From contig SMSO01000034.1 of the NCBI GenBank assembly GCA_004764695.1, positions 4,588,001 through 4,652,000 on the forward strand: a DNA stretch of 64,000 nt, given 5' to 3'. Below, in pieces: positions 911-29,770 of this stretch. Source of the stretch: Schizochytrium sp. TIO01 (taxonomy: Eukaryota; Protista; Bigyra: Labyrinthulomycetes). The notes under the pieces are model-generated. The model saw only the letters and a program-made list of their open reading frames with translations. It made no database searches and had not been told where the DNA came from. Numbering within the stretch: position 1 is the first letter of the stretch; each line of letters opens with the position of its first letter. A program made the translations under genes and the position numbers.

Positions 911-3067
911 TCACTCAGAAGCTCCAGCACTAGGTTCTCGTGCCTGTGGTTCGTTTTCAGTTATCTCCCCACGTTGCTGGTCATCACCAGTGACTTGATC
1001 ATCGGGAATAGTTTGCTCGAGAGAATCTTCTACTTGTGCTCTGTTCTTCTTCTTCTTCTTCTTTTTCTTTATTTTGATTTCAGGCGGGGCATCTGCAACG
1101 GAGGGAGGAGTTTCTAGGTCACCACCGTTGACTTCTGCTTGGGTTTCCAGATCCTTAGTTTTCGTCTGGGCATCTTCATGAGAAGGAAGTGGTTCTGGAT
1201 TACCATCATTGTTGTCTAATAGTAGGTTCTCTGGATCTTGGTACTTTGAAGCTACCAATTGACCAATAATATTTGCACTGTCTTGCGAAGGCGTTGCATC
1301 ATCATGCTTTTCTGCGAGTATGGAGTTGAGAATCTCTTTGTTTCCTGATATAAGTGCTTCTGCATTCCCTGAAAGATCAATATAAGAGCTTTGGCCACTT
1401 GCTGAAGGCCCAATCATATCGTCGGTGTGCTCGGAAATAATTGTGGACCGCAAAATATCCTCACCACCACTGGGATCATCAGTGAGGTTCGAAAGGTCTG
1501 CAGAGATGAACGACAACGCTTCAAGATTATCACCCTTTGCTAAAGCGAGCATTGTACTTCGAACATTGGATTTATGGCGCGCTAGCCTTCGCCCTTCTTT
1601 GGTGTTTTCGTTCCCTCCCTCAGCTGGTGCCACTCGGCCGCGCTTTTCACTACGAGACTTCTTGTCGCCAACTTGGGACAGTTGTGATGTTACATGTTCT
1701 GAAAGCACTTTAGAACGGCTTGGATTGATTCGGGCCATCATGTTCTGCATATCTGTCATGTGCTTAAACTGCTTAAACTTATCAGTAGCATGCTCAATAA
1801 CATCCAAACCCACCATTTCTTCTAATGGGTTAACTCGAATACTGAATCCACAAAGAAGAAGGCCTTTGAGGTACAGATATGTCCAGAGCATGGACCATAC
1901 AAGAATAGAAATAGCACCTAGCAACTGTATTCCAAGTAGTTTGAAGTTAAGGCTATAAAACAATCCAGCGTAGGCAACTTCTGTGCCGCCACAGCGAGTT
2001 TCGTGAGCGAAAAAACCAATACCCACAGTCCCAACCATAGCAGAAACAAGATGGACAGGCAACACTCCAACTACGTCATCAATATTGAGCTTTGGCAAAA
2101 GCTCCATGGAGAATACAGCCGCGATCGCACCAACAGCGCCCAAAACAGCGGCCTCCCACGCGTTAATAACATGCGCACCGCCCGTCACAGCTACGAGTCC
2201 AGACAAAACAGCAACACCAATGGTTCCAGGTTTCATAACTTTAGATCTCCATAGTCCAAAGGCAGACCCGGCACTGCCACCAAAGCATACACCAAGGGTT
2301 GTAGTAAATGCAGCATGGGCAGCAACGATGTGGCCTCCATTTGTAAGTCCGAGAGAGCTACCAGCGTTAAATCCAATCCATCCGAAAAGTAAGAGCATAC
2401 TTCCGTAGAGTACATGCACAGACTCGCCTGCAAAAACCTTATGAGATAACTCAAGTTGTTTCTCAACACACTTCAATTCTTCAGGAATTGGGTAATTCAG
2501 TTTGCCCATTCGCGGGCCAAGCATAAAGCTGCATACAAGGGCTGAGGCACCACCAAGAAGGTGGACAACGCTAACTCCGGCAAGGTCGATATACCCAAGA
2601 GTGTTTAACCATCCTTGTGGGTGCCAGACCCAATGCGTAGCAACAGGATATGTAAAAAGGGTCATCCAAAAAGAAAGTCCAAAATAGACCCAGAGCTTCA
2701 TACGCTCTGCGCATGCACCACTATCAATGGTTGAAGCGGTAGCTGCAAAACTGAGCTGGAAAAACCAGGCAGCATAGTCTAAATATTCATCTGCAAAAAA
2801 TTGAGTGGTTCCAATAAATCCTCCAGCAGATTCTCCGTATGCGAAGCCCCATCCTAGCATCCAATATGCCATTCCACCTAACAACAGATCTGCAAGATTC
2901 TTCACCAAAATATTCACAGTGTTATTCAGACGTACACTGCCACTTTCTAGCAGTGCAAAGCCACCTTGCATGGTCAAGACCAGTACACCGCATGATATGA
3001 GCCATGATGTATCACCTGGATCTCGACCATATGCGCAAACCTCAGTATCTGTAATATTAGATGACAT
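911..3067 (-). CDS. amt: Ammonium transporter (Amt/Mep/Rh family) with long disordered C-terminal tail
   Basis: 718 aa intronless ORF with Amt motifs MQGGFALLESG, GACAER, DLAGVSVVHLLGG, FGWIGFNAGS, DDVVGVLPVH and EMVGLD. Many hydrophobic segments in the first ~430 aa. Confidence 0.95.
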   Translation of the reverse strand: MSSNITDTEVCAYGRDPGDTSWLISCGVLVLTMQGGFALLESGSVRLNNTVNILVKNLADLLLGGMAYWMLGWGFAYGESAGGFIGTTQFFADEYLDYAAWFFQLSFAATASTIDSGACAERMKLWVYFGLSFWMTLFTYPVATHWVWHPQGWLNTLGYIDLAGVSVVHLLGGASALVCSFMLGPRMGKLNYPIPEELKCVEKQLELSHKVFAGESVHVLYGSMLLLFGWIGFNAGSSLGLTNGGHIVAAHAAFTTTLGVCFGGSAGSAFGLWRSKVMKPGTIGVAVLSGLVAVTGGAHVINAWEAAVLGAVGAIAAVFSMELLPKLNIDDVVGVLPVHLVSAMVGTVGIGFFAHETRCGGTEVAYAGLFYSLNFKLLGIQLLGAISILVWSMLWTYLYLKGLLLCGFSIRVNPLEEMVGLDVIEHATDKFKQFKHMTDMQNMMARINPSRSKVLSEHVTSQLSQVGDKKSRSEKRGRVAPAEGGNENTKEGRRLARHKSNVRSTMLALAKGDNLEALSFISADLSNLTDDPSGGEDILRSTIISEHTDDMIGPSASGQSSYIDLSGNAEALISGNKEILNSILAEKHDDATPSQDSANIIGQLVASKYQDPENLLLDNNDGNPEPLPSHEDAQTKTKDLETQAEVNGGDLETPPSVADAPPEIKIKKKKKKKKNRAQVEDSLEQTIPDDQVTGDDQQRGEITENEPQAREPSAGASE

Positions 3068-6000
3068 TTAATTATAAGCACCAATGTGCTTTTTACTAAA
3101 CACTCTATTATGTGACTAGCATGTAGCAGGGTGACGTGCCTGCGTCTCCAAACAGGGTTTGCTTGATTGTTCTAATATTCTTCACTGGTAGAGGCCCCGT
3201 GTGCAGTTTCCAATTTAGCCTCTATTTTTTTTATCAATCTATCCCCACAGCTATTTCTCAACGGAGACAAATTCGGAAGGAGGAGGTCGTAATTGTGATC
3301 TTTGTCTCCATTCTGCACCATCCTTAATAGTGCAATAGAATTGGCTCAAAGTAGTGGTGACAACGAAATAGCACAAAAAGGAAGCGAAACTTGCAGATAG
3401 ATGGCTTTAAAATGGGAATATGTTTGTTACTCTCGTGAAAAGAGAAGACACCCACGTTTTATTATGCGAAACTAAAATGTGCCTTTCAATTGACAAATCT
3501 CCGTCGCCGTGTAAAAAACGGCGAACAGCTTCCTCCAGCACCTTCCCTTCACCACGAAGTCATTTATTTTCTTTTCTTCTTTTCTTTTTTTTGGGGGGGG
3601 GGTCCGGGACCCTTATTCACCAGCGTGCTTGAAGGAGTACTCGTAGATATCAAAGACCAGCCACCTAGGCAAAGGTTCCTCTAGCAACGTCCCTGCCTTA
3701 GTCTATCTCGGAGGAAGCACATTTTACACTTAGTCGAACGGATTTTTTCTGTTGGTCAGGATCTTGAAAAAATAGGAACCATTTCTGGAGATGAAAGCCG
3801 TGACATTAGTTTGGGCTAAGGCTTGCGTTACTCATGCTTATGTGAGGGTCCAAAGTCCCTTTAAAAAGACATGGAGCTCACAGCACTAAGATACATTATT
3901 TACTTTATTTTAACACGTATGATATTTAGACCCCCAAAATAATTGCTACACTCGAATGATTTGGATGCTGTTCCGTTGAGCTGTTCCAGCTGGTTCGTCG
4001 CATACATGCAAAACATGATACTGATGATACTTAAACAATCATTTTTGAGTACGCCACAACAGACCACTTGAAAGCTAATATTCAATGTGACATGAAAGTA
4101 GTGAGACTGCTCTCGAAACCTGTTCTCTTGAAAAGAAGTTTGTCCGTTACATCAATTCGGATTGCCCTTCTTGACACATTGGTACTTTGAGTCATAGACG
4201 CATGCTACATGGCTGTAGAAAGGTTATAAAAAGAACGAGCAGTGCTTGCGATCACCTGGAGCGCACTTAGAGTGTCAAAAAAGCTAGCAGGAAAGCAAGC
4301 AGCTCGCAAAAGTTCGATACCAACTGCCATTTTTACAATGATTTTTTTTTTTTTCAATTGTAAAAGCCACACTCGATTTAGCTCCAAAAGAAGTAAGATT
4401 AACCCTTTTCAATACGTAGGGCACGCTTCTATCTCTAAAGTTACGACTTCAGCGATGTTCAAATCTGTGGGAGATTGTTTTCTTATTCCAAGTTGTTGTC
4501 ACGGCTTCTTCATTTTGATTGACTGTTTTGGTTTCCTTTTCGTTTTTCCTTCGCTTGCTTTTCTCCTTCAACCTTTTTTCCGCAAGGGGGCATGGACAGC
4601 AGCAGGGAGGACAAGAGGAATTGACACGTAGAAAGTATTACATGTGCAATCGCGAATGATGTGAGTGCTTTCGTTTTAGGCGTCCTTGCTCTCCCCGGCA
4701 ATGTCTCACATTTTCTAAATATTTGAAAAAAGAAAGAAAAAGAAAGACCAAGAGGCAAAATATCTTGCTTGCTTTAAAACTATGCTTTGATGCGTTTAAA
4801 ACATAGCCTCAATTAAATGAATGAGCATTCTACGTAGTGCAAGCTAGCATAATGTTCTAGGTTCCAGGTCTCGAGCCGTTACTCTCTTCTTACTAAGTAA
4901 TTATGCTCGATTGAAAAAAACACGATTTGGACATGGATATGTTGGTTGATGCGTGATTCAAAGATTGTACAAGGCTACTGATAGTCTGTTGGGTATAGAG
5001 CCTATGGTGTTTCGAGCTTACAATCAAAGTATCTATAGCCTGTCAAATCAAGGAACGCGGTACTACAAAAATTAAAAAAGTTGACACTTAATGTGCTTGC
5101 CAGTGGAAGAGAAAACCAAATGGGCCATGGGTTGGCCGTGCTAAAAGTCCACCAAAAACTTAAAAAAAAAGACTAGGGAGTCGTTTCATTCAATTTTTAA
5201 TCTCATCTGATATATGGCCCTTCATAAAAGAGAATACATCGCGGAGGGCAGCACTGATAAGAAAGAAACCAGTATCAACGCTCAACATGTATATTTAGTT
5301 ACATGACTCGGAGATGAAAAACCTCAAGCCATTGCATAAATATTTGGAGTGATAAATGGGTCTTCTGTACATTCCCATGAAACGTCTTGCGATAGTTTAG
5401 AAAGTGACTGATCGACAAAAATGCCAACTGTGACATACATCACTTCAACACCTCTACTCTGTAGTCCAGGTTAGTGCTCGCAAAAAGGGGTAGCTTTGCA
5501 GTTTGTTTCTAACACTGAAAACCCATACCACATGTTTCCGAAAGAGTCCGTTTACGCTTCATTTATTCGCGCAAACATATTTTTGCTAATTGACTTTTAC
5601 TTGTGATCACCTTATTATTATACTTGCGCTCCAAATCCTTTCCACCAAACAGCTTTCACCTTGTGGGACATAACCGGCCTATATAGTTTCGTAGGACCTT
5701 GTCACTCAATAATAGAATCTTTGACATCTCATTGCAAAATTTTCAATATCACAAGAGCACCCATCTCCGATGTTTTCCTGCCCTTGCGCGTATGCCACCT
5801 TCATCTTCAATCACACGATACCATTCAACGGACCTTTTACTTGACCCCTCTTTACAACTTCAACTTAGCATTATATCTTTCCGCACAATAATCATCGTTA
5901 TTAGTAGTAATGATAAGAATGCAATTTCGTTCTGTTCCGTTCCTTTGCGCACGCGCTTCTTTCAACATGTTGATTGCACCTCCTGGGGTTTATGAATCAT

Positions 6001-23522: not shown

Positions 23523-24893
23523 TTAAACGTATTCGTCGGCTCTGGCAGGCGCGTTTCCTGGCAAATCGCCATCTCTGGTGTGGAAAGATGCTACTTTTTC
23601 TTTGAACTTTTCGGCGGTACGGTATGACGCAAGGTGTTGCATGTTCACGCGAAAGGTTGATGTATCTGTAAATGATGGGTCAACTGGGCTTTCAAAGTTG
23701 TTGCTTAAATCCTGCTTTGCTTCAAGTTCAGAGATACGCTTCACTCGATTAGAGAGGACACGCCAAATGTACCATTGAGCAGCAACAAGAACACCTAGAA
23801 TCCCATACACAAATATGTCATTAAGGATGGTCGCTGCACTTATTTTCCCGACAGGAGCATACTGTTTCCAGTCCAAGGCCAAGACCGCATAAGCTACTCC
23901 GCCAATCAATGTCACGCATGACCAAAGTATTGCCGAGCGGGTGGTTGTGTGGACAAACTTTAACATCTTTCGATAGCGTTCGAGTGGAGCCTTCGCTTGA
24001 TTAGGTCCATACGTGAGTTGAGCTGGTGTTTCTACAACTGGTCGAAGTCCTTCGGTCTTTATGGTCTCAGGTGTTTTCGGTGGCGCCGTGAAGTCCTGTG
24101 ACTTGGATTTGGGTCGTTGGCGTTCAGGGTCAACAGTCGAACTAGCCTCGTGCAGGAGTGCTGTAAGACGACGGTGGCCGACAATAAAGGAAAGAACTAC
24201 AAAAATGATGAACGGAAAAGCAACTAGCATTGTGTAGAAGGGCTGATTCAAAGTCATCACAACAACAATGGCAGCCGTAAACACGATTTCAAACACGATG
24301 ATAACTTTTCGATACACGGTTAAAAAGCGCGGCTGATGTCGGAGCTTGCGGGTTTCATGCGCCACTTGTAGCCAGAGTAAGGAGACATTCAGAGCTACTA
24401 ATGTTGTGAATGTTGCTGTAAGACCTGTGAAAGCGCGATCATAAGAAACTAGTTCAGAATGTTTGTTTGGACCATTCTTCAAGCGCCTAGTGAAGAGACC
24501 TGGTCTCAAGAAAGTGCAGATCGCAATCAACCTCCAAGCAATCAATACCCATAACGCAGTTGTTGCAAAAATCGCAGTAACATTTCCAGCTGTGAAAAAA
24601 GAGAAACCTTTATCAACCCTGCTTACTCGCCATAGTGTTTGCAAGCCCTTGATTGCCCAGACGCAAGCATAGAGAGCTGTAAATGCCTGTAGGGAGATTG
24701 ATACGTATGTTGGCATAGAGTACTCAAGACAATCAGACCCAGTCCAACCATACCAAGTGGAGCATGCACACGTGGAGGGCCCTGCTTCGGCACCAAAGGC
24801 ATCATAATACCACGAGAGTTCCGAGGTATAACATATCAATGTTGTTGGACAATCCCAGTCTGTGGTGCAATTAACATTAGTACTATCATTCAT
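23523..24893 (-). CDS. EGF-like Cys-rich / 7TM receptor-like protein, paralog 2
   Basis: 456 aa. CTTDWDCPTTLICY...CACSTWYGWTGSDC, LNVSLLWLQVA, QWYIW, ASFH, ends DEYV. Confidence 0.85.
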   Translation of the reverse strand: MNDSTNVNCTTDWDCPTTLICYTSELSWYYDAFGAEAGPSTCACSTWYGWTGSDCLEYSMPTYVSISLQAFTALYACVWAIKGLQTLWRVSRVDKGFSFFTAGNVTAIFATTALWVLIAWRLIAICTFLRPGLFTRRLKNGPNKHSELVSYDRAFTGLTATFTTLVALNVSLLWLQVAHETRKLRHQPRFLTVYRKVIIVFEIVFTAAIVVVMTLNQPFYTMLVAFPFIIFVVLSFIVGHRRLTALLHEASSTVDPERQRPKSKSQDFTAPPKTPETIKTEGLRPVVETPAQLTYGPNQAKAPLERYRKMLKFVHTTTRSAILWSCVTLIGGVAYAVLALDWKQYAPVGKISAATILNDIFVYGILGVLVAAQWYIWRVLSNRVKRISELEAKQDLSNNFESPVDPSFTDTSTFRVNMQHLASYRTAEKFKEKVASFHTRDGDLPGNAPARADEYV

Positions 24894-25911
24894 TTTTTAA
24901 ACACGTGAGTGGGCAAGAACTCCTGCCGTATATAGTAGTCTGAGACGTTTTTGATTTGCTGCCTTGTTGTGCTGCTGCATTTTTTTTATAAATTATCTCC
25001 TCACCCCCAACCCCCAAACAGCTCTTTGCGAACTTGTTATCACAACTCCTTCTCCATGCTATTTGGACAGTACGAATCGGTGAGACTTTTCTCACGCGTT
25101 GGATCTTGGGGTGTTTAGGGGAACACATATTTTCTCATAGTGGTGTGACTGCGACAGAGAAAAGGTAAGCACGAGTCACCTAGAGCTACTGCACGTGCTG
25201 GAAGCTAAACTTGGTATCTATTAGTTTACAGTCGGCAAGTAGGTACTACTCTTTGATCTTGTTCTCCATCGCAGCCTCATACGATATTTAAGGGAGGTAA
25301 GTCAAATAACTCTCAGTACTCAGGAACTTCATAGTGAAAGTAGCTCCAGGGATGTTAGAACAAAGTGAAATAAAGAATCTCGATATACGATACTGAAATA
25401 GCAAGTCCCAAATGAGACACACGTACAATGTCTCCTGCACGTGCGGGCTGTGGTTGGCGCACGACTGCCCGTGTAAAGGCATATTTGTCAGCAATGGAGT
25501 ATCTAGGTGCTTGCTATGAAGGGTTCAAGGTTTGAGCTGATCTCTACTATGCTGAGAGATGTTTCACCATAAGAGACTTTTGTACACTGCTGGGGACTGT
25601 TTTGAGAAGCCCTAAGCCACAAGACCATCCATTTAGAATGTACTTCCAGTTTGAGGTAGTAGCACGTGTAGATATAGCATGCTGCGTTTCGCGAGAGACA
25701 AAATACAAGAGCAGTAATGTGAGCTAGAGTTGTATCCTTGGCGCTAATGTGGCCGATGTTGAATATTAGATATTTGCAAAAAGAAAGATTGGAAACAGAA
25801 GAAACAAATAACGTTAAAAGCGATAACTTATATTTCGATGTGATTGTTTCATATTAACCATATATTATGTTTAGTTAGATTATTAATAAGAAGTAGAGGT
25901 TAGATAAGAAA

Positions 25912-26610
25912 ATGGGGAGGCCGAGGAACCGACAAGCTCCAAACACTGCAAGTGGAGCAAACCTCGAATACAAACCAGCAAAGTTCTTTCACCAGAAGTT
26001 TGGGGTCTCAGCAAGCGCCCTTCGGGGCTGGGCCGACGGCGGACGCGTGCGCTTCGCGCGCTTCCCCGGAGGCAAGCGCATCTATGCCAGCGACGATGTT
26101 GAGCGCATCTTTGATTGCGGTTCCACCGGCCGCGAGCAACGCAGCTCTGGATGTACCGTTATCTACGCCAGAGTGTCCTCGGTCAAGCAAAAGGAGGACC
26201 TCGAACGCCAGGTTGGCGATCTCCAGCGCGCCTACCCAGATGCTTCCGCCGTCTACAAAGACATCGGTAGCGGGGTCAATTTCAAACGCCAAGGTCTGTG
26301 CTCCCTACTGGACGCCTGTGACCGCGGCGGAATCGGCCAAGTTGTGGTCATGCACCGCGACCGACTTGCGCGAATCGCAGTCGACCTCTTGGAACACCTT
26401 TTCGAAAGACAAAATGTCAAACTCGTGGTACACGGCCAAGATGCACATGCCGGAGACTCAGACACCTTCACCAAAGACCTCCTCGGAATCATCACCGTCT
26501 TTGTGGCATCGCATCACGGAAAACGAGCAGCGCAAAATAGACGGCGACGACGCAGCGAGGAAGAAGCGAGCTCGCACGAAGGCGCGCAAGACCATCAAGA
26601 AAGAATATAA
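25912..26610 (+). CDS. tnpA: IS607-family serine recombinase/transposase TnpA
   Basis: 232 aa. N-terminal MerR-like HTH (GVSASALRGWADGG...PGGKRIY) precedes the catalytic domain IYARVSS (Ser at 26176), QKEDLERQ, DIGSGVNFKRQGL, HRDRLAR, DLLGIITVF. This HTH-first order is diagnostic of IS607 TnpA. Confidence 0.95.
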   Translation: MGRPRNRQAPNTASGANLEYKPAKFFHQKFGVSASALRGWADGGRVRFARFPGGKRIYASDDVERIFDCGSTGREQRSSGCTVIYARVSSVKQKEDLERQVGDLQRAYPDASAVYKDIGSGVNFKRQGLCSLLDACDRGGIGQVVVMHRDRLARIAVDLLEHLFERQNVKLVVHGQDAHAGDSDTFTKDLLGIITVFVASHHGKRAAQNRRRRRSEEEASSHEGAQDHQERI

Positions 26611-27888
26611 CCTTGTCCGTACCAGAAAGGTTAGGGTATATCCTACTAAAGATCAACGTACACAGTTGCTTAAATGGTTTGGTGTCACTAGAAGAGCCTA
26701 CAATATTGGCGTTGCGTTTCACCGAGACATGGCGAAGGGCGAGAAAGAAGCCATCAAATTGCATCAAGAAGCGTGCATCAAAAAGGATCGTAAGACGAAG
26801 CAGGTTTTGGTAGATGAAGATGGGAATCCAAAAACACATGGGGCCCTTGGTGGAGAACTGAATGCCGTCCGATATAAAGAAAGACATGATGCTCCTAAAT
26901 GGGTTGTCGAGGTCCCACAGGCTATCCGTGATTCCGGGATTCGGGATTTCTTCAAGGCTATTAACTCGGGACGAGCCAAAAACGAAGAACTCGCTGTACA
27001 AAAGAAAGTCCATGAGCAACTTTTTATAAGTTTCGGACCAAGCGTGATGAATCACAGATTTTCGAAGTGAATGCACGTACCTGGAATTTGAAGAAATCAA
27101 AGACCTCCAACTTTCTAAAAGAATTCCGAACACGTAAAGAAGAGTTCCCCGACCAGATTTCGAACGCCATGCGTGTGCAAATGAATCGCCTTGGGCATGT
27201 CTACTTCTGCTTCTTACGAGAAGAAAAAAAGCGTCCAATGGACCAGGCACCCAAGGCGCACCATGGTGTCATTGCTCTAGACCCGGGTGTTCGCTCGTTT
27301 CAGACGATGTATGACGCCGATGGCCGCGCCATTGAATGGGGCACAGGGAAAGATTTTAGAACCATATTCTATCTCTGTCGCCGCGTTGATAAGATCCAAA
27401 GCAGCATTGATAAAAAGAAAACTGCATCCAGTGATAAAGACAATTTCAACACCCCCTTGAAGCGCGCCTTCTATCGCGCCCAACTCAAGATCAAGAACAA
27501 GATCACTGAGATTCACCGCAAGCTCGCGCTTTGGCTTTGTGAAAACTATCGTGTTATTCTCCTGCCCAAATTCGAAACCTCTAAGATGAGCAGGAGGATG
27601 GAGCGACGGATCTCCAAGAAGTCTATTCGAATGATGTGTCGTTGGTCCCATTTTGGGTTCCGCCAGGCTCTCATTCATAAGGCTGAGATGTTCCCGTGGT
27701 GCAAGCTTGTTCTTTGCCAAGAAAGTTACACTTCCAAAACATGCAATGAGTGTGGTACCCTCCACCATAACCTCGGGGCATCCAAGATTTTCCAATGCCC
27801 TAATCCCAAGTGCAACCATGTAGCAGACCGTGATATCCATGCCGCAAGAGGCATCCTTTTACGCTACCTATCCAAAGACATGATTTAA
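26084..27888 (+). CDS. tnpB: Fanzor2 / TnpB RNA-guided RuvC endonuclease, split by a single frameshift near 27021-27025
   Basis: 5' part (frame of ORF 25952-27070; first ATG 26084, alternative 26240): RTRKVRVYPT..Q...L.KWFGVTRRAYN and W...P..IRD...DFFKA. 3' part: YKFRTKRDESQ, RuvC-I IALDPGVR (D at 27280), ILLPKFE, QESYTSKTC (E at 27721), zinc finger CNECG...CPNPKC, RuvC-III DRDIHAARGI (D at 27832). Adding one T gives a continuous ~601 aa protein. Confidence 0.9.
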
Positions 27889-27994
27889 AAAAAATCATTT
27901 CATTGAGTCGCGGGTTAGTCTAACTAATCCGCGATCGGGTCTTAGACCTGCTATGAAATGCAAGTTTTGCAAATTTTGTAGTTTAAAATCTAAG
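27880..27994 (+). ncRNA. Putative omega-RNA (reRNA) scaffold of the Fanzor2; guide predicted from about 27995 onward
   Basis: Immediately after the Fanzor stop. Closing stem CATTTCAT (27896-27903) / ATGAAATG (27953-27960) encloses an 11-bp hairpin TCGCGGGTTAG-TCTAA-CTAATCCGCGA (27908-27934) and a 6-bp hairpin CGGGTC-TTA-GACCTG (27936-27950). Position matches the known right-end location of TnpB/Fanzor guide RNAs. 5' end unknown. Confidence 0.65.
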
Positions 27995-28028
27995 AGAAGA
28001 AACAAATTGGGTTTCACATTGTGATTAC

Positions 28029-28230
28029 AAAAGAAAGAAAGAAAGAAAGAAAGAAAGAACGAAAGGAAATTGGAAGAAAAGCTGAGGAAGCCTATTTCTT
28101 GTGGAATAGTACATACTCTTGGCTCGGAGCTTGACGATGTGATTGTAGAAACAGTTTCTTCAATCTTGAAGTAGAATGCGTACTACTAATTTATCCTATT
28201 CATTTTTCCTTTCTTGGACAGAAGGAACAG

Positions 28231-28261
<31 letters not shown>
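28029..28261. repeat. (AAAG)n at 28029-28059 and (AC)n at 28233-28261
   Basis: Directly visible simple repeats. Confidence 0.9.
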
Positions 28262-28468
28262 TCTATAAAACGTTTCCTCATGTTTAATTCACCAAAAAAC
28301 AAGCTCGAAACGAAAAGAAGGGGAGAATGATTGTGGACAGACCTAACGCTGTTCACAACATAGAGCATATCTCCATATTACAGTGAACTTAATTGAAGCA
28401 ACACTCTGGACACGAAAGAAGGAAAGAAGACAAGCCCAGTAGCGCCCCCAACATTTGTTCTGAGGCGT

Positions 28469-29770
28469 TTAGACGTAGTCATCATTGGGGTCGTGGTGCT
28501 TCTTTTCTGGCTCATCCTCATAATAGTCGGCATGAAAAGATGCTGCACCCTCCTGGAACCTCTGTTGGTATGGAACAACAGGCTGCGTTGAGCCTGGCTT
28601 GTTGTTAAATGTCGGGTTCACTGAAAATGTGTTTGTGAAGGAATTGTCTTCCTTAGAAGCTGTCTTGAACTCGGTGATCTGCTTACGGATGCGACGAGTG
28701 CGAGCACGAATGACTCGCCAGATATACCATTGAACGGTTGATACGACACCGAGAATACCAATGCTAAAAACCTCATTCATGGCGGCTGCAGAGTTTACAT
28801 GGCCAGGTTTTCCATATGCTTTCCAGTTCATGCTAAGAACCGCATACGAAGCACCGGCACCAAGCGTGACAAGGCCCCAACCAATAACCATACGGCTAGT
28901 GTTACGGATGAGACGCATCATACTTTTGTACTTGCGAGTTTTTGTGGATGCCTCAGATTCCTGCTTGGAGTTGTTAAAGGATGGTTCATCATCCTTACTG
29001 GTGTTGTTATCAACAGAGGCTGAATATGAGGTGGTCATACTATGCAACAACCTGGTCATACGGAGTTGACCAATGAAGAAGGTGATTTCCACAAAGACTA
29101 TGAAGGGAAATGCAGCAATGGTTGCATATGAAGGCATGTTGAGACCAAGGAGGATAATCAGAATGATTGTGAAGATCACCTCAAAAACAAGAATGAGCTT
29201 GCGGTAGAAGCCGAGATAGGTTGCTTGACGGCGGAATTTCTTTGAGGTGTTTGCCACTTGAATCCACATGAGTGAAACATTAAGCGCACAGAGAGTTGCA
29301 AAAAGTGCGGTAAGGCAAGCGAGCACACGATCTCCCATCGTGTAGTCAGTGTATTTATCAGTATCTTCTGATACCGTGTAGGTGTATTTGGTAGGACTTG
29401 CGTAGATCACCATCAGCAGTGTCCTATAAGTTGCGAGCACAATGAGTGCCACAGTAGAGTAAATTGCGGTGATGTTGGACGCGTTGAAGAATTTTCCTTC
29501 TTGCTGGACAGAAAATAGTCTAAAAAGTACATAGACACCGACTGCTGCCCAGCATATGGACACCAGCGAAACACAACCCTGGATCACCAGATACACATAG
29601 GTATGAGTGGAGATTTCATCACAATCGTCACCAGTCCAAGCATACCAGGTTGAGCAATCACACGTGGAGGTGATGTCAGATCCATATACGCTCTCAAACC
29701 ATGAAAGCTCGTTTGTGTAGCACACCAAGGTGTCAGGGCAGTCGAGATCTGTAGAACAGTTGTATGACAT
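28469..29770 (-). CDS. EGF-like Cys-rich / 7TM receptor-like protein, paralog 3
   Basis: 433 aa. CSTDLDCPDTLVCY...CDCSTWYAWTGDDC, LNVSLMWIQVA, QWYIW, EDNSFTNTF, AASFH, ends DDYV. Confidence 0.85.
   Translation of the reverse strand: MSYNCSTDLDCPDTLVCYTNELSWFESVYGSDITSTCDCSTWYAWTGDDCDEISTHTYVYLVIQGCVSLVSICWAAVGVYVLFRLFSVQQEGKFFNASNITAIYSTVALIVLATYRTLLMVIYASPTKYTYTVSEDTDKYTDYTMGDRVLACLTALFATLCALNVSLMWIQVANTSKKFRRQATYLGFYRKLILVFEVIFTIILIILLGLNMPSYATIAAFPFIVFVEITFFIGQLRMTRLLHSMTTSYSASVDNNTSKDDEPSFNNSKQESEASTKTRKYKSMMRLIRNTSRMVIGWGLVTLGAGASYAVLSMNWKAYGKPGHVNSAAAMNEVFSIGILGVVSTVQWYIWRVIRARTRRIRKQITEFKTASKEDNSFTNTFSVNPTFNNKPGSTQPVVPYQQRFQEGAASFHADYYEDEPEKKHHDPNDDYV

Follow-up and report, generated by a model that had tools for sequence, protein, structure and literature searches.

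Fanzors, the TnpB-derived RNA-guided nucleases of eukaryotes and giant viruses, have been shown to cleave DNA in vitro as well as in human cells. We know of no established role that a Fanzor plays for its transposon in a native eukaryotic host. The described system closest to the one presented here is the Fanzor2 of Acanthamoeba polyphaga mimivirus (ApmFz2 or ApmFNuc; protein L79; PDB 9B0L), which is carried by the IS607-type element ISvMimi. It has a disordered N-terminus of 64 amino acids (aa) (PMC10530073) and an element with a non-coding right end of ~200 nt. Relative to ordinary TnpBs, Fanzors are marked by DPG at RuvC-I and by a catalytic Glu situated six residues ahead of the zinc finger rather than ~50 (PMC10711439). 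Here, we examine a 64,000-nt stretch of the genome of the labyrinthulomycete Schizochytrium sp. TIO01 (contig SMSO01000034.1, positions 4,588,001 to 4,652,000; hereafter the window, in whose coordinates all positions are given). Its segment 25799-27996 is very probably a recently inserted member of a multi-copy family of IS607-type transposons residing in a thraustochytrid-type protist genome, with a Fanzor2 gene that is partly overprinted on tnpA; in this particular copy the Fanzor2 gene is broken.

The element has much in common with that of ApmFz2: a helix-turn-helix (HTH) and a RuvC domain with DPG, alternative Glu, zinc finger, and RD; an IS607 TnpA neighbor; a conserved, structured non-coding right end; and an N-terminal region with a nuclear localization signal (NLS). 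The two nucleases are only ~18% identical over their Foldseek structural alignment, however, and here a ~175-aa extension lies over tnpA as an overprint, the right end has 108 nt of non-coding sequence, and the second cysteine pair is CxxxxC. With bacterial IS607 elements that carry an alternative-Glu TnpB (e.g., ISXfa1; PMC10711439), it shares the order tnpA then nuclease on one strand, the lack of terminal inverted repeats (TIRs), a presumed dinucleotide crossover at both junctions, and a putative right-end guide RNA with the last element bases in its scaffold. It differs from them in apparently having AG rather than GG at the crossover, in its eukaryotic host, in the NLS-like stretch and N-terminal extension of its nuclease, and in a gene overlap that takes in virtually all of tnpA beyond 26084. 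Animal Fanzor2s (Mercenaria, Dreissena, and Batillaria) and the Fanzor1s SpuFz and GtFz are likewise TnpB-derived eukaryotic nucleases with a relocated catalytic Glu, and by analogy the present protein would be RNA-guided as they are. Several mollusc Fanzor2 elements have TIRs and target-site duplications (PMC10711439), unlike the present element, whose tips lack TIRs. The features of the locus are as follows.

25796-25798, + strand: CAG of the left flank, presumed to be the target motif or a motif on the side of the target-adjacent motif (TAM); its AG (25797-25798) is the presumed crossover dinucleotide
25799-27996, + strand: IS607-type element (2,198 bp), limits from aligning 20 copies plus flanks
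25799-25911, + strand: non-coding left end of 23% G+C, presumed to serve as promoter and 5' leader (20-copy alignment, composition)
25912-26610, + strand: intact tnpA, IS607-family serine recombinase, 232 aa (open reading frame [ORF] plus Pfam, NCBIfam, and PDB matches)
26084-27070, + strand: 5' piece of Fanzor2, +1 frame relative to tnpA, ending in a premature stop (27068-27070) caused by the frameshift; it contains the N-terminal extension (26084-26596), a basic NLS-like stretch (26558-26590), and the HTH (26630-26704)
27019-27020, + strand: site of the 1-bp deletion (a missing T) that breaks the Fanzor2 frame (copy alignment, RNA contigs)
27016-27888, + strand: 3' piece of Fanzor2, stop 27886-27888 (Pfam, regular expression, alignment to 9b0l_P)
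27280-27288, + strand: RuvC-I DPG, within ALDPGVR (motif search; invariant in 17 homologues)
27559-27573, + strand: LLPKF, with Pro at the canonical RuvC-II Glu position (aligned with 9b0l_P)
27721-27723, + strand: alternative Glu, in ESYTSKTC (27721-27744; aligned with 9b0l_P)
27742-27813, + strand: zinc-finger cysteines (motif search)
27829-27834, + strand: RuvC-III RD, in ADRD (27823-27834; motif search)
27868-27996, + strand: right end, presumed scaffold of an omega-RNA (also reRNA or fRNA) (folding, alignment)
27873-27905, 27907-27935, 27936-27950, and 27950-27982, + strand: right-end hairpins of the predicted fold
27997-28012, + strand: right flank, the putative guide of a read-through transcript, judged from known Fanzor2/TnpB architecture
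25797-25809 and 27995-28007, + strand: 13-nt exact direct repeat, spacing 2,198 bp, unexplained

The first-pass annotation of the window, made from its letters alone, had placed a near-complete IS607-Fanzor2 system at 25770-28014. Every part of the element that it named was found, but the 20-copy alignment moves the ends to 25799-27996, and the nuclease frame is broken in this copy while sister copies are intact. Its intact serine-recombinase gene of IS607 type was borne out: TnpA scores 144 bits against the NCBIfam model NF033518 "IS607 family transposase" (cut-off 110; model positions 3-187 of 187) and 2.6e-19 against the Pfam Resolvase family PF00239, with a weak MerR-type HTH besides, and matches the catalytic domains of IS607-family TnpAs in the PDB (3ilx and 6dgc) at ~1e-18. 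The TnpB-type core of the nuclease had also been recognized correctly, whereas the upstream start of its ORF, overlapping tnpA in another frame, had been missed.

Both pieces of the nuclease match TnpB-type Pfam domains: the 5' piece HTH_OrfB_IS605 (PF12323, 2.2e-09), and the 3' piece Cas12f1-like_TNB (PF07282, 8.3e-14) and, below the cut-off, OrfB_IS605 (PF01385, 1e-03). The guided_TnpB model NF040570 gives 92 bits, slightly below its cut-off of 100. The rearranged RuvC-II that had been predicted for the locus is present, with Pro at the canonical position and the alternative Glu followed by six residues and then CNEC. Signatures were searched with a regular expression after Yoon et al. in which the second Cys pair was relaxed; this pair reads CPNPKC (CxxxxC), so that a strict CxxC expression fails, and close homologues have CxxC. 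Full-length tests used a natural intact copy from the same genome (L004), with no frame repaired and no exons joined. Its best PDB match by phmmer is the mimivirus "TnpB-like protein L79" (9b0l_P, 3e-20), and all other solved chains, Cas12f included, score 6e-08 or weaker. An AlphaFold model of this nuclease, built on a 17-sequence alignment, has a mean predicted local distance difference test (pLDDT) of 67, with most of the core at 70-93. The top Foldseek match of the model is again the 9B0L Fanzor2 ternary complex (9b0l_P, 2.6e-17), followed by ISDra2 TnpB and Cas12f; the Fanzor1 SpuFz is far more distant, at only 2e-05 and with no sequence match. By these PDB sequence matches and by predicted fold, the nuclease stands nearer to Fanzor2 than to either Fanzor1 or canonical TnpB.

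The main finding concerns the arrangement of the two genes. The nuclease frame of intact copies runs without a stop over 661-662 codons, beginning close to the tnpA start codon, and is +1 relative to tnpA. The second AUG of the element (26084), the first after that of tnpA, opens an ORF of 601 aa with ~175 codons over tnpA, and this start lies ~510 nt upstream of the TnpB core. In another subfamily (L015) the AUG lies 16 codons farther upstream, giving 617 aa. No other AUG intervenes between those of tnpA and Fanzor2 in the window copy, in the same-genome copies L004 and L015, or in L031 and L041 from foreign DNA. The kind of element is known; its gene layout, with a Fanzor2 extension over tnpA, is undescribed: this overlap is not mentioned in the Fanzor papers searched (PMC10711439, PMC10530073, and PMC13565253 among them) and was not found by full-text search.

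All 17 aligned homologues (38-49% identity) have an N-terminal extension of 150-280 aa with invariant Trp, Ser, and Leu positions; the closest homologues (P0002-P0017) include a Durusdinium protein. The same +1 layout occurs in a 2.4-kb metagenome element (L031), on a 281-kb viral contig (L041), and on a contig of a giant-virus metagenome-assembled genome (MAG; L042). The tnpA frame is open in both viral cases, yet the gene looks compromised: three residues are missing at the catalytic-serine motif in the first (L041:2559-3356), and there is no ATG in the frame of the second (L042:2748-3449).

Such persistence might arise without any function for the overlap. Fanzor2 could be translated from an internal AUG (e.g., 26441, just before the NLS), and the open +1 frame could be a by-product of a G+C-rich and constrained tnpA. 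Much of the conservation of the extension is indeed imposed by tnpA, as synonymous-codon shuffles of tnpA alone reach ~20% alternative-frame identity with only 2-5 stops. The observed excess over these shuffles is genuine yet modest, at z = 1-3.5 for identity and z = 1.8-4.6 for BLOSUM scores, and the lack of stops alone gives P ~0.004-0.11 per lineage. The extension also matches no Pfam family, is predicted to be mostly disordered (AlphaFold pLDDT < 50 apart from two helices), and is placed by a protein language model in Resolvase clusters at 0.80, a placement that any off-frame translation of a real gene should give and that is no evidence of function.

As most of the conservation is imposed by tnpA and the open-frame test is only weakly significant per lineage, the case for the extension rests on loci that lack tnpA. 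One of these, L043, belongs to the giant-virus MAG that also holds L042, shows no nucleotide similarity to L042, and has 16 stops in the frame equivalent to tnpA. The extensions of L043 and L042 are nevertheless 41% identical over 129 aa (E = 1e-22), with a proportion of nonsynonymous differences (pN) of 0.43 against a saturated synonymous proportion (pS) of 0.86; the corresponding values for the core are 0.22 and 0.77. A G+C-rich solo Fanzor2 with a GT..AG intron (L030) has no tnpA and keeps the extension motif. It occupies positions 1981-4305 of a metagenome contig, has an intron of ~150 nt (about 2848-2994), and is likely a eukaryote-resident or domesticated copy. Thus, the extension survives as a protein where tnpA is gone, which marks it as genuine coding sequence. 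Within the family itself, variable sites among the eight intact copies are fewer in the overlap (19/524) than in the single-coding part (109/1,224; P = 5e-05). Given these loci, the reduced variability, the invariant residues of the homologues, and the constant position of the Fanzor AUG, we regard a non-functional overlap as unlikely.

Beyond the single element, we lean towards the view that a Fanzor2 clade of protists (thraustochytrids and a dinoflagellate) and giant viruses carries a 150-200-aa extension wholly overprinted on IS607 tnpA in the +1 frame. Leaky scanning on a single mRNA would yield both proteins. As the extension outlasts tnpA, it would have its own function, and derivatives with a dead tnpA and an intact Fanzor2 would still be spreading in this genome. 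This arrangement resembles the overprinted genes of viruses (e.g., paramyxovirus P/C), where an older gene encodes, in its +1 frame, a second and mostly disordered protein region that may be reached by leaky scanning of one mRNA. It is unlike P/C in that overprinting here supplies the N-terminus of a large, preexisting enzyme in a DNA transposon.

We find that the element belongs to a resident family. There are 59 matches to it in its own 64-Mb assembly, including at least 20 near-full copies (89-100% identity in this search, and 94-99% by the overall figure for the family) with unrelated flanks on 10 contigs (13 when more diverged matches are counted). The window copy is 98-99% identical to its nearest copies, in keeping with the young age that the first-pass annotation had given it, and older, decayed matches at 67-87% identity lie in the same genome. 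Both ORFs are intact in eight copies (L002, L004, L006, L011, L013, L014, L015, and L016). The diverged copies L021-L029 are all decayed and are uninformative on selection.

The break in the window copy is a private one. An extra T after 27019 is present in all 19 other copies and in RNA contigs, which identifies the break as a plain 1-bp deletion of the window copy. An intron or a programmed frameshift at 27020-27070 was considered and ruled out, as every other copy has one T more. The frame is therefore broken here, as had been noticed from the sequence, but the artificial correction once proposed is unneeded, since natural intact copies exist.

The earlier suggestion that the element was probably acquired horizontally did not hold for the window copy. 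A recent acquisition, for instance from a giant virus, would agree with the same-layout relatives on the giant-virus contigs L041 and L042, with the giant-virus contig that carries L043, with the 57% G+C of tnpA against 43% for the window, and with the enrichment of Fanzor2 in giant viruses (PMC10530073). At the protein level, however, the nearest foreign relatives share only 35-49% identity, whereas sister copies in the same genome diverge from the window copy by 1-2%. The presence of fossils beside young copies indicates that the family has long been resident and that the window copy arose by transposition within the genome. We thus hold a recent acquisition to be decidedly unlikely, although an ancient viral route may be envisaged from the relatives carried by giant-virus contigs.

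That the locus might be a contaminant, or a chimeric assembly of a bacterial IS607/TnpB element, is scarcely credible. Nothing speaks for it except that both genes are of bacterial ancestry. Against it stand the copies in unique flanks on megabase-sized contigs, the combination of DPG and alternative Glu that is a Fanzor signature, transcripts in protist transcriptomes, and the presence of the stretch in at least 16 runs from 9 studies. The eukaryotic setting claimed at the outset is likewise supported by the size of the contigs (up to 9.8 Mb in the 64-Mb genome) and by MMETSP protist transcripts at 96% identity.

Several copies carry a further insertion of 294 bp between the tnpA AUG and the Fanzor AUG, without target duplication and with a (CTAAC)n run inside. 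It lies at L007:1207-1500, equivalent to a position after 25995 of the window, and also in L009, L010, L018, and G000:C13:5455966-5456259. The insertion is one of a family of repeats for which the genome shows 40 or more matches, occurs in RNA contigs too, and is identical in the five element copies, which are at different loci. Five loci with an identical insertion indicate that a tnpA-disrupted derivative spread in trans. The Fanzor2 frame is open in three of the four insertion-bearing copies that were fetched; L018 is truncated.

The limits of the element are sharp. Similarity among the 20 copies begins right after CAG (25796-25798) and stops at 27996, with unrelated flanks on both sides. 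CAG abuts the left end in 15 of 19 copies, GAG in one, and TCG in two, and there is no conservation farther upstream. AG precedes the left end in 16/19 copies and closes the right end in all, and the base following the right end is A or T in 18/19. The AG shared by both ends fits a serine-recombinase crossover at a common dinucleotide, as is known for IS607 elements, where it is GG in described cases (PMC10711439). A search for terminal inverted repeats found no inverted pair linking both tips, as for IS607.

In the window copy, 2 bp have been deleted from the left end, and its tip is atypical. The first ~6 nt past CAG (25799-25805) vary among L001-L020, even in copies otherwise 98-99% identical, while the right-end tip is invariant. 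The 13-nt repeat across the junctions of the window copy extends to 15/16 nt over 25794-25809 and 27992-28007; the normal left-end tip has been swapped for a copy of the right flank. Junction direct repeats of 8-13 nt occur in 3 of 18 copies (the window copy, and L014 and L016 with 8-9 nt); the maximum among 306 non-self control pairings was 8 nt.

The structured non-coding 3' end that had been proposed is confirmed by folding. The right end reaches -41.5 kcal/mol, compared with -20.5 +/- 3.1 for shuffled sequences (z = -6.8; 0/200 as good). Aligning 23 distinct right ends from this genome puts 89.7% of cells in base pairs, compared with ~42% when partners are slid. The stem of hairpin 27936-27950 changes between subfamilies in a covarying manner while its loop is kept; covariation is otherwise limited, as the family is young. 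The invariant tip at 27989-27995, near the element end, can pair with the loop of this hairpin (27940-27946). A pseudoknot has been described for Fanzor2 omega-RNAs (PMC13565253), and the loop-tip pairing would resemble it. An Rfam search of the right end returned no family.

The element is transcribed, on the plus strand, and is present in RNA assemblies. The ORFs of 601 and 617 aa also occur in two MMETSP transcripts, P0001 (96% identity) and P0121. Contigs of two presumed-RNA runs cover 25804-28025 and do not include the unique left flank. RNA-assembly contigs continue past 27996 into the flanks of other copies and reach within a few nucleotides of the left-end tip. Two oligo-dT RNA sequencing assemblies labeled as another organism contain short contigs inside the element. 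Splicing was considered and rejected: no GT..AG joints were found in the RNA assemblies, and low-depth joints resemble deletion derivatives.

From these observations, a working model can be drawn. A single plus-strand transcript would be read from its first AUG (25912) to give TnpA and, by leaky scanning, from the next AUG (26084) to give the 601-aa Fanzor2. The latter would consist, in order, of the ~175 overprinted residues, the NLS-like stretch, an HTH/recognition (REC) part, and a RuvC domain with the Fanzor-type rearranged active site. The last ~130 nt of the element would form the structured RNA, and read-through into the flank would supply the guide. TnpA would move the element by crossover at AG, with a preference for a CAG that has A or T after it. 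Guided by the right-end RNA, Fanzor2 might then cut the empty site, made up of CAG and the former right flank, and repair would restore the element, a form of homing. The window copy keeps tnpA and both ends and has lost its Fanzor2 frame through the deletion after 27019.

Several points weigh against this interpretation. The tnpA AUG stands in a strong context (A at -3 and G at +4), which is unfavorable to leaky scanning. The crossover dinucleotide would be AG, as against GG in described IS607 elements, and the junction repeats in three copies, the window copy among them, should not result from a serine recombinase. The second cysteine pair of the zinc finger departs from CxxC. The processing of the omega-RNA, its use in cleavage, and a TAM of CAG type are steps that we infer from sequence. 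That runs X15 and X16 are RNA is an automated guess, and contigs cannot show where an RNA starts or ends or how strongly it is expressed.

Two minus-strand ORFs (23523-24893 and 28469-29770) flank the element. These ORFs are paralogous and intronless, encode 456 and 433 aa with a Cys-rich N-terminus and several hydrophobic segments, and match no family in a Pfam search. Microsatellites, (GAAA)n at 28022-28071 and (CA)n at 28219-28272, lie just 3' of the right end.

Here, the Schizochytrium genome supplies a young, multi-copy family that is present in RNA assemblies and includes several copies with both tnpA and Fanzor2 intact. It also offers natural controls: the frameshifted window copy, and the tnpA-disrupted copies that still multiplied. 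For expression work, the annotated "core" ORF would fall short by its start codon and ~175 residues. The dual-coding layout offers a clear example of N-terminal gain in a large enzyme through overprinting of its neighbor. If the extension does have a function of its own, it could serve in nuclear or chromatin targeting, or in controlling the balance between transposase and nuclease.

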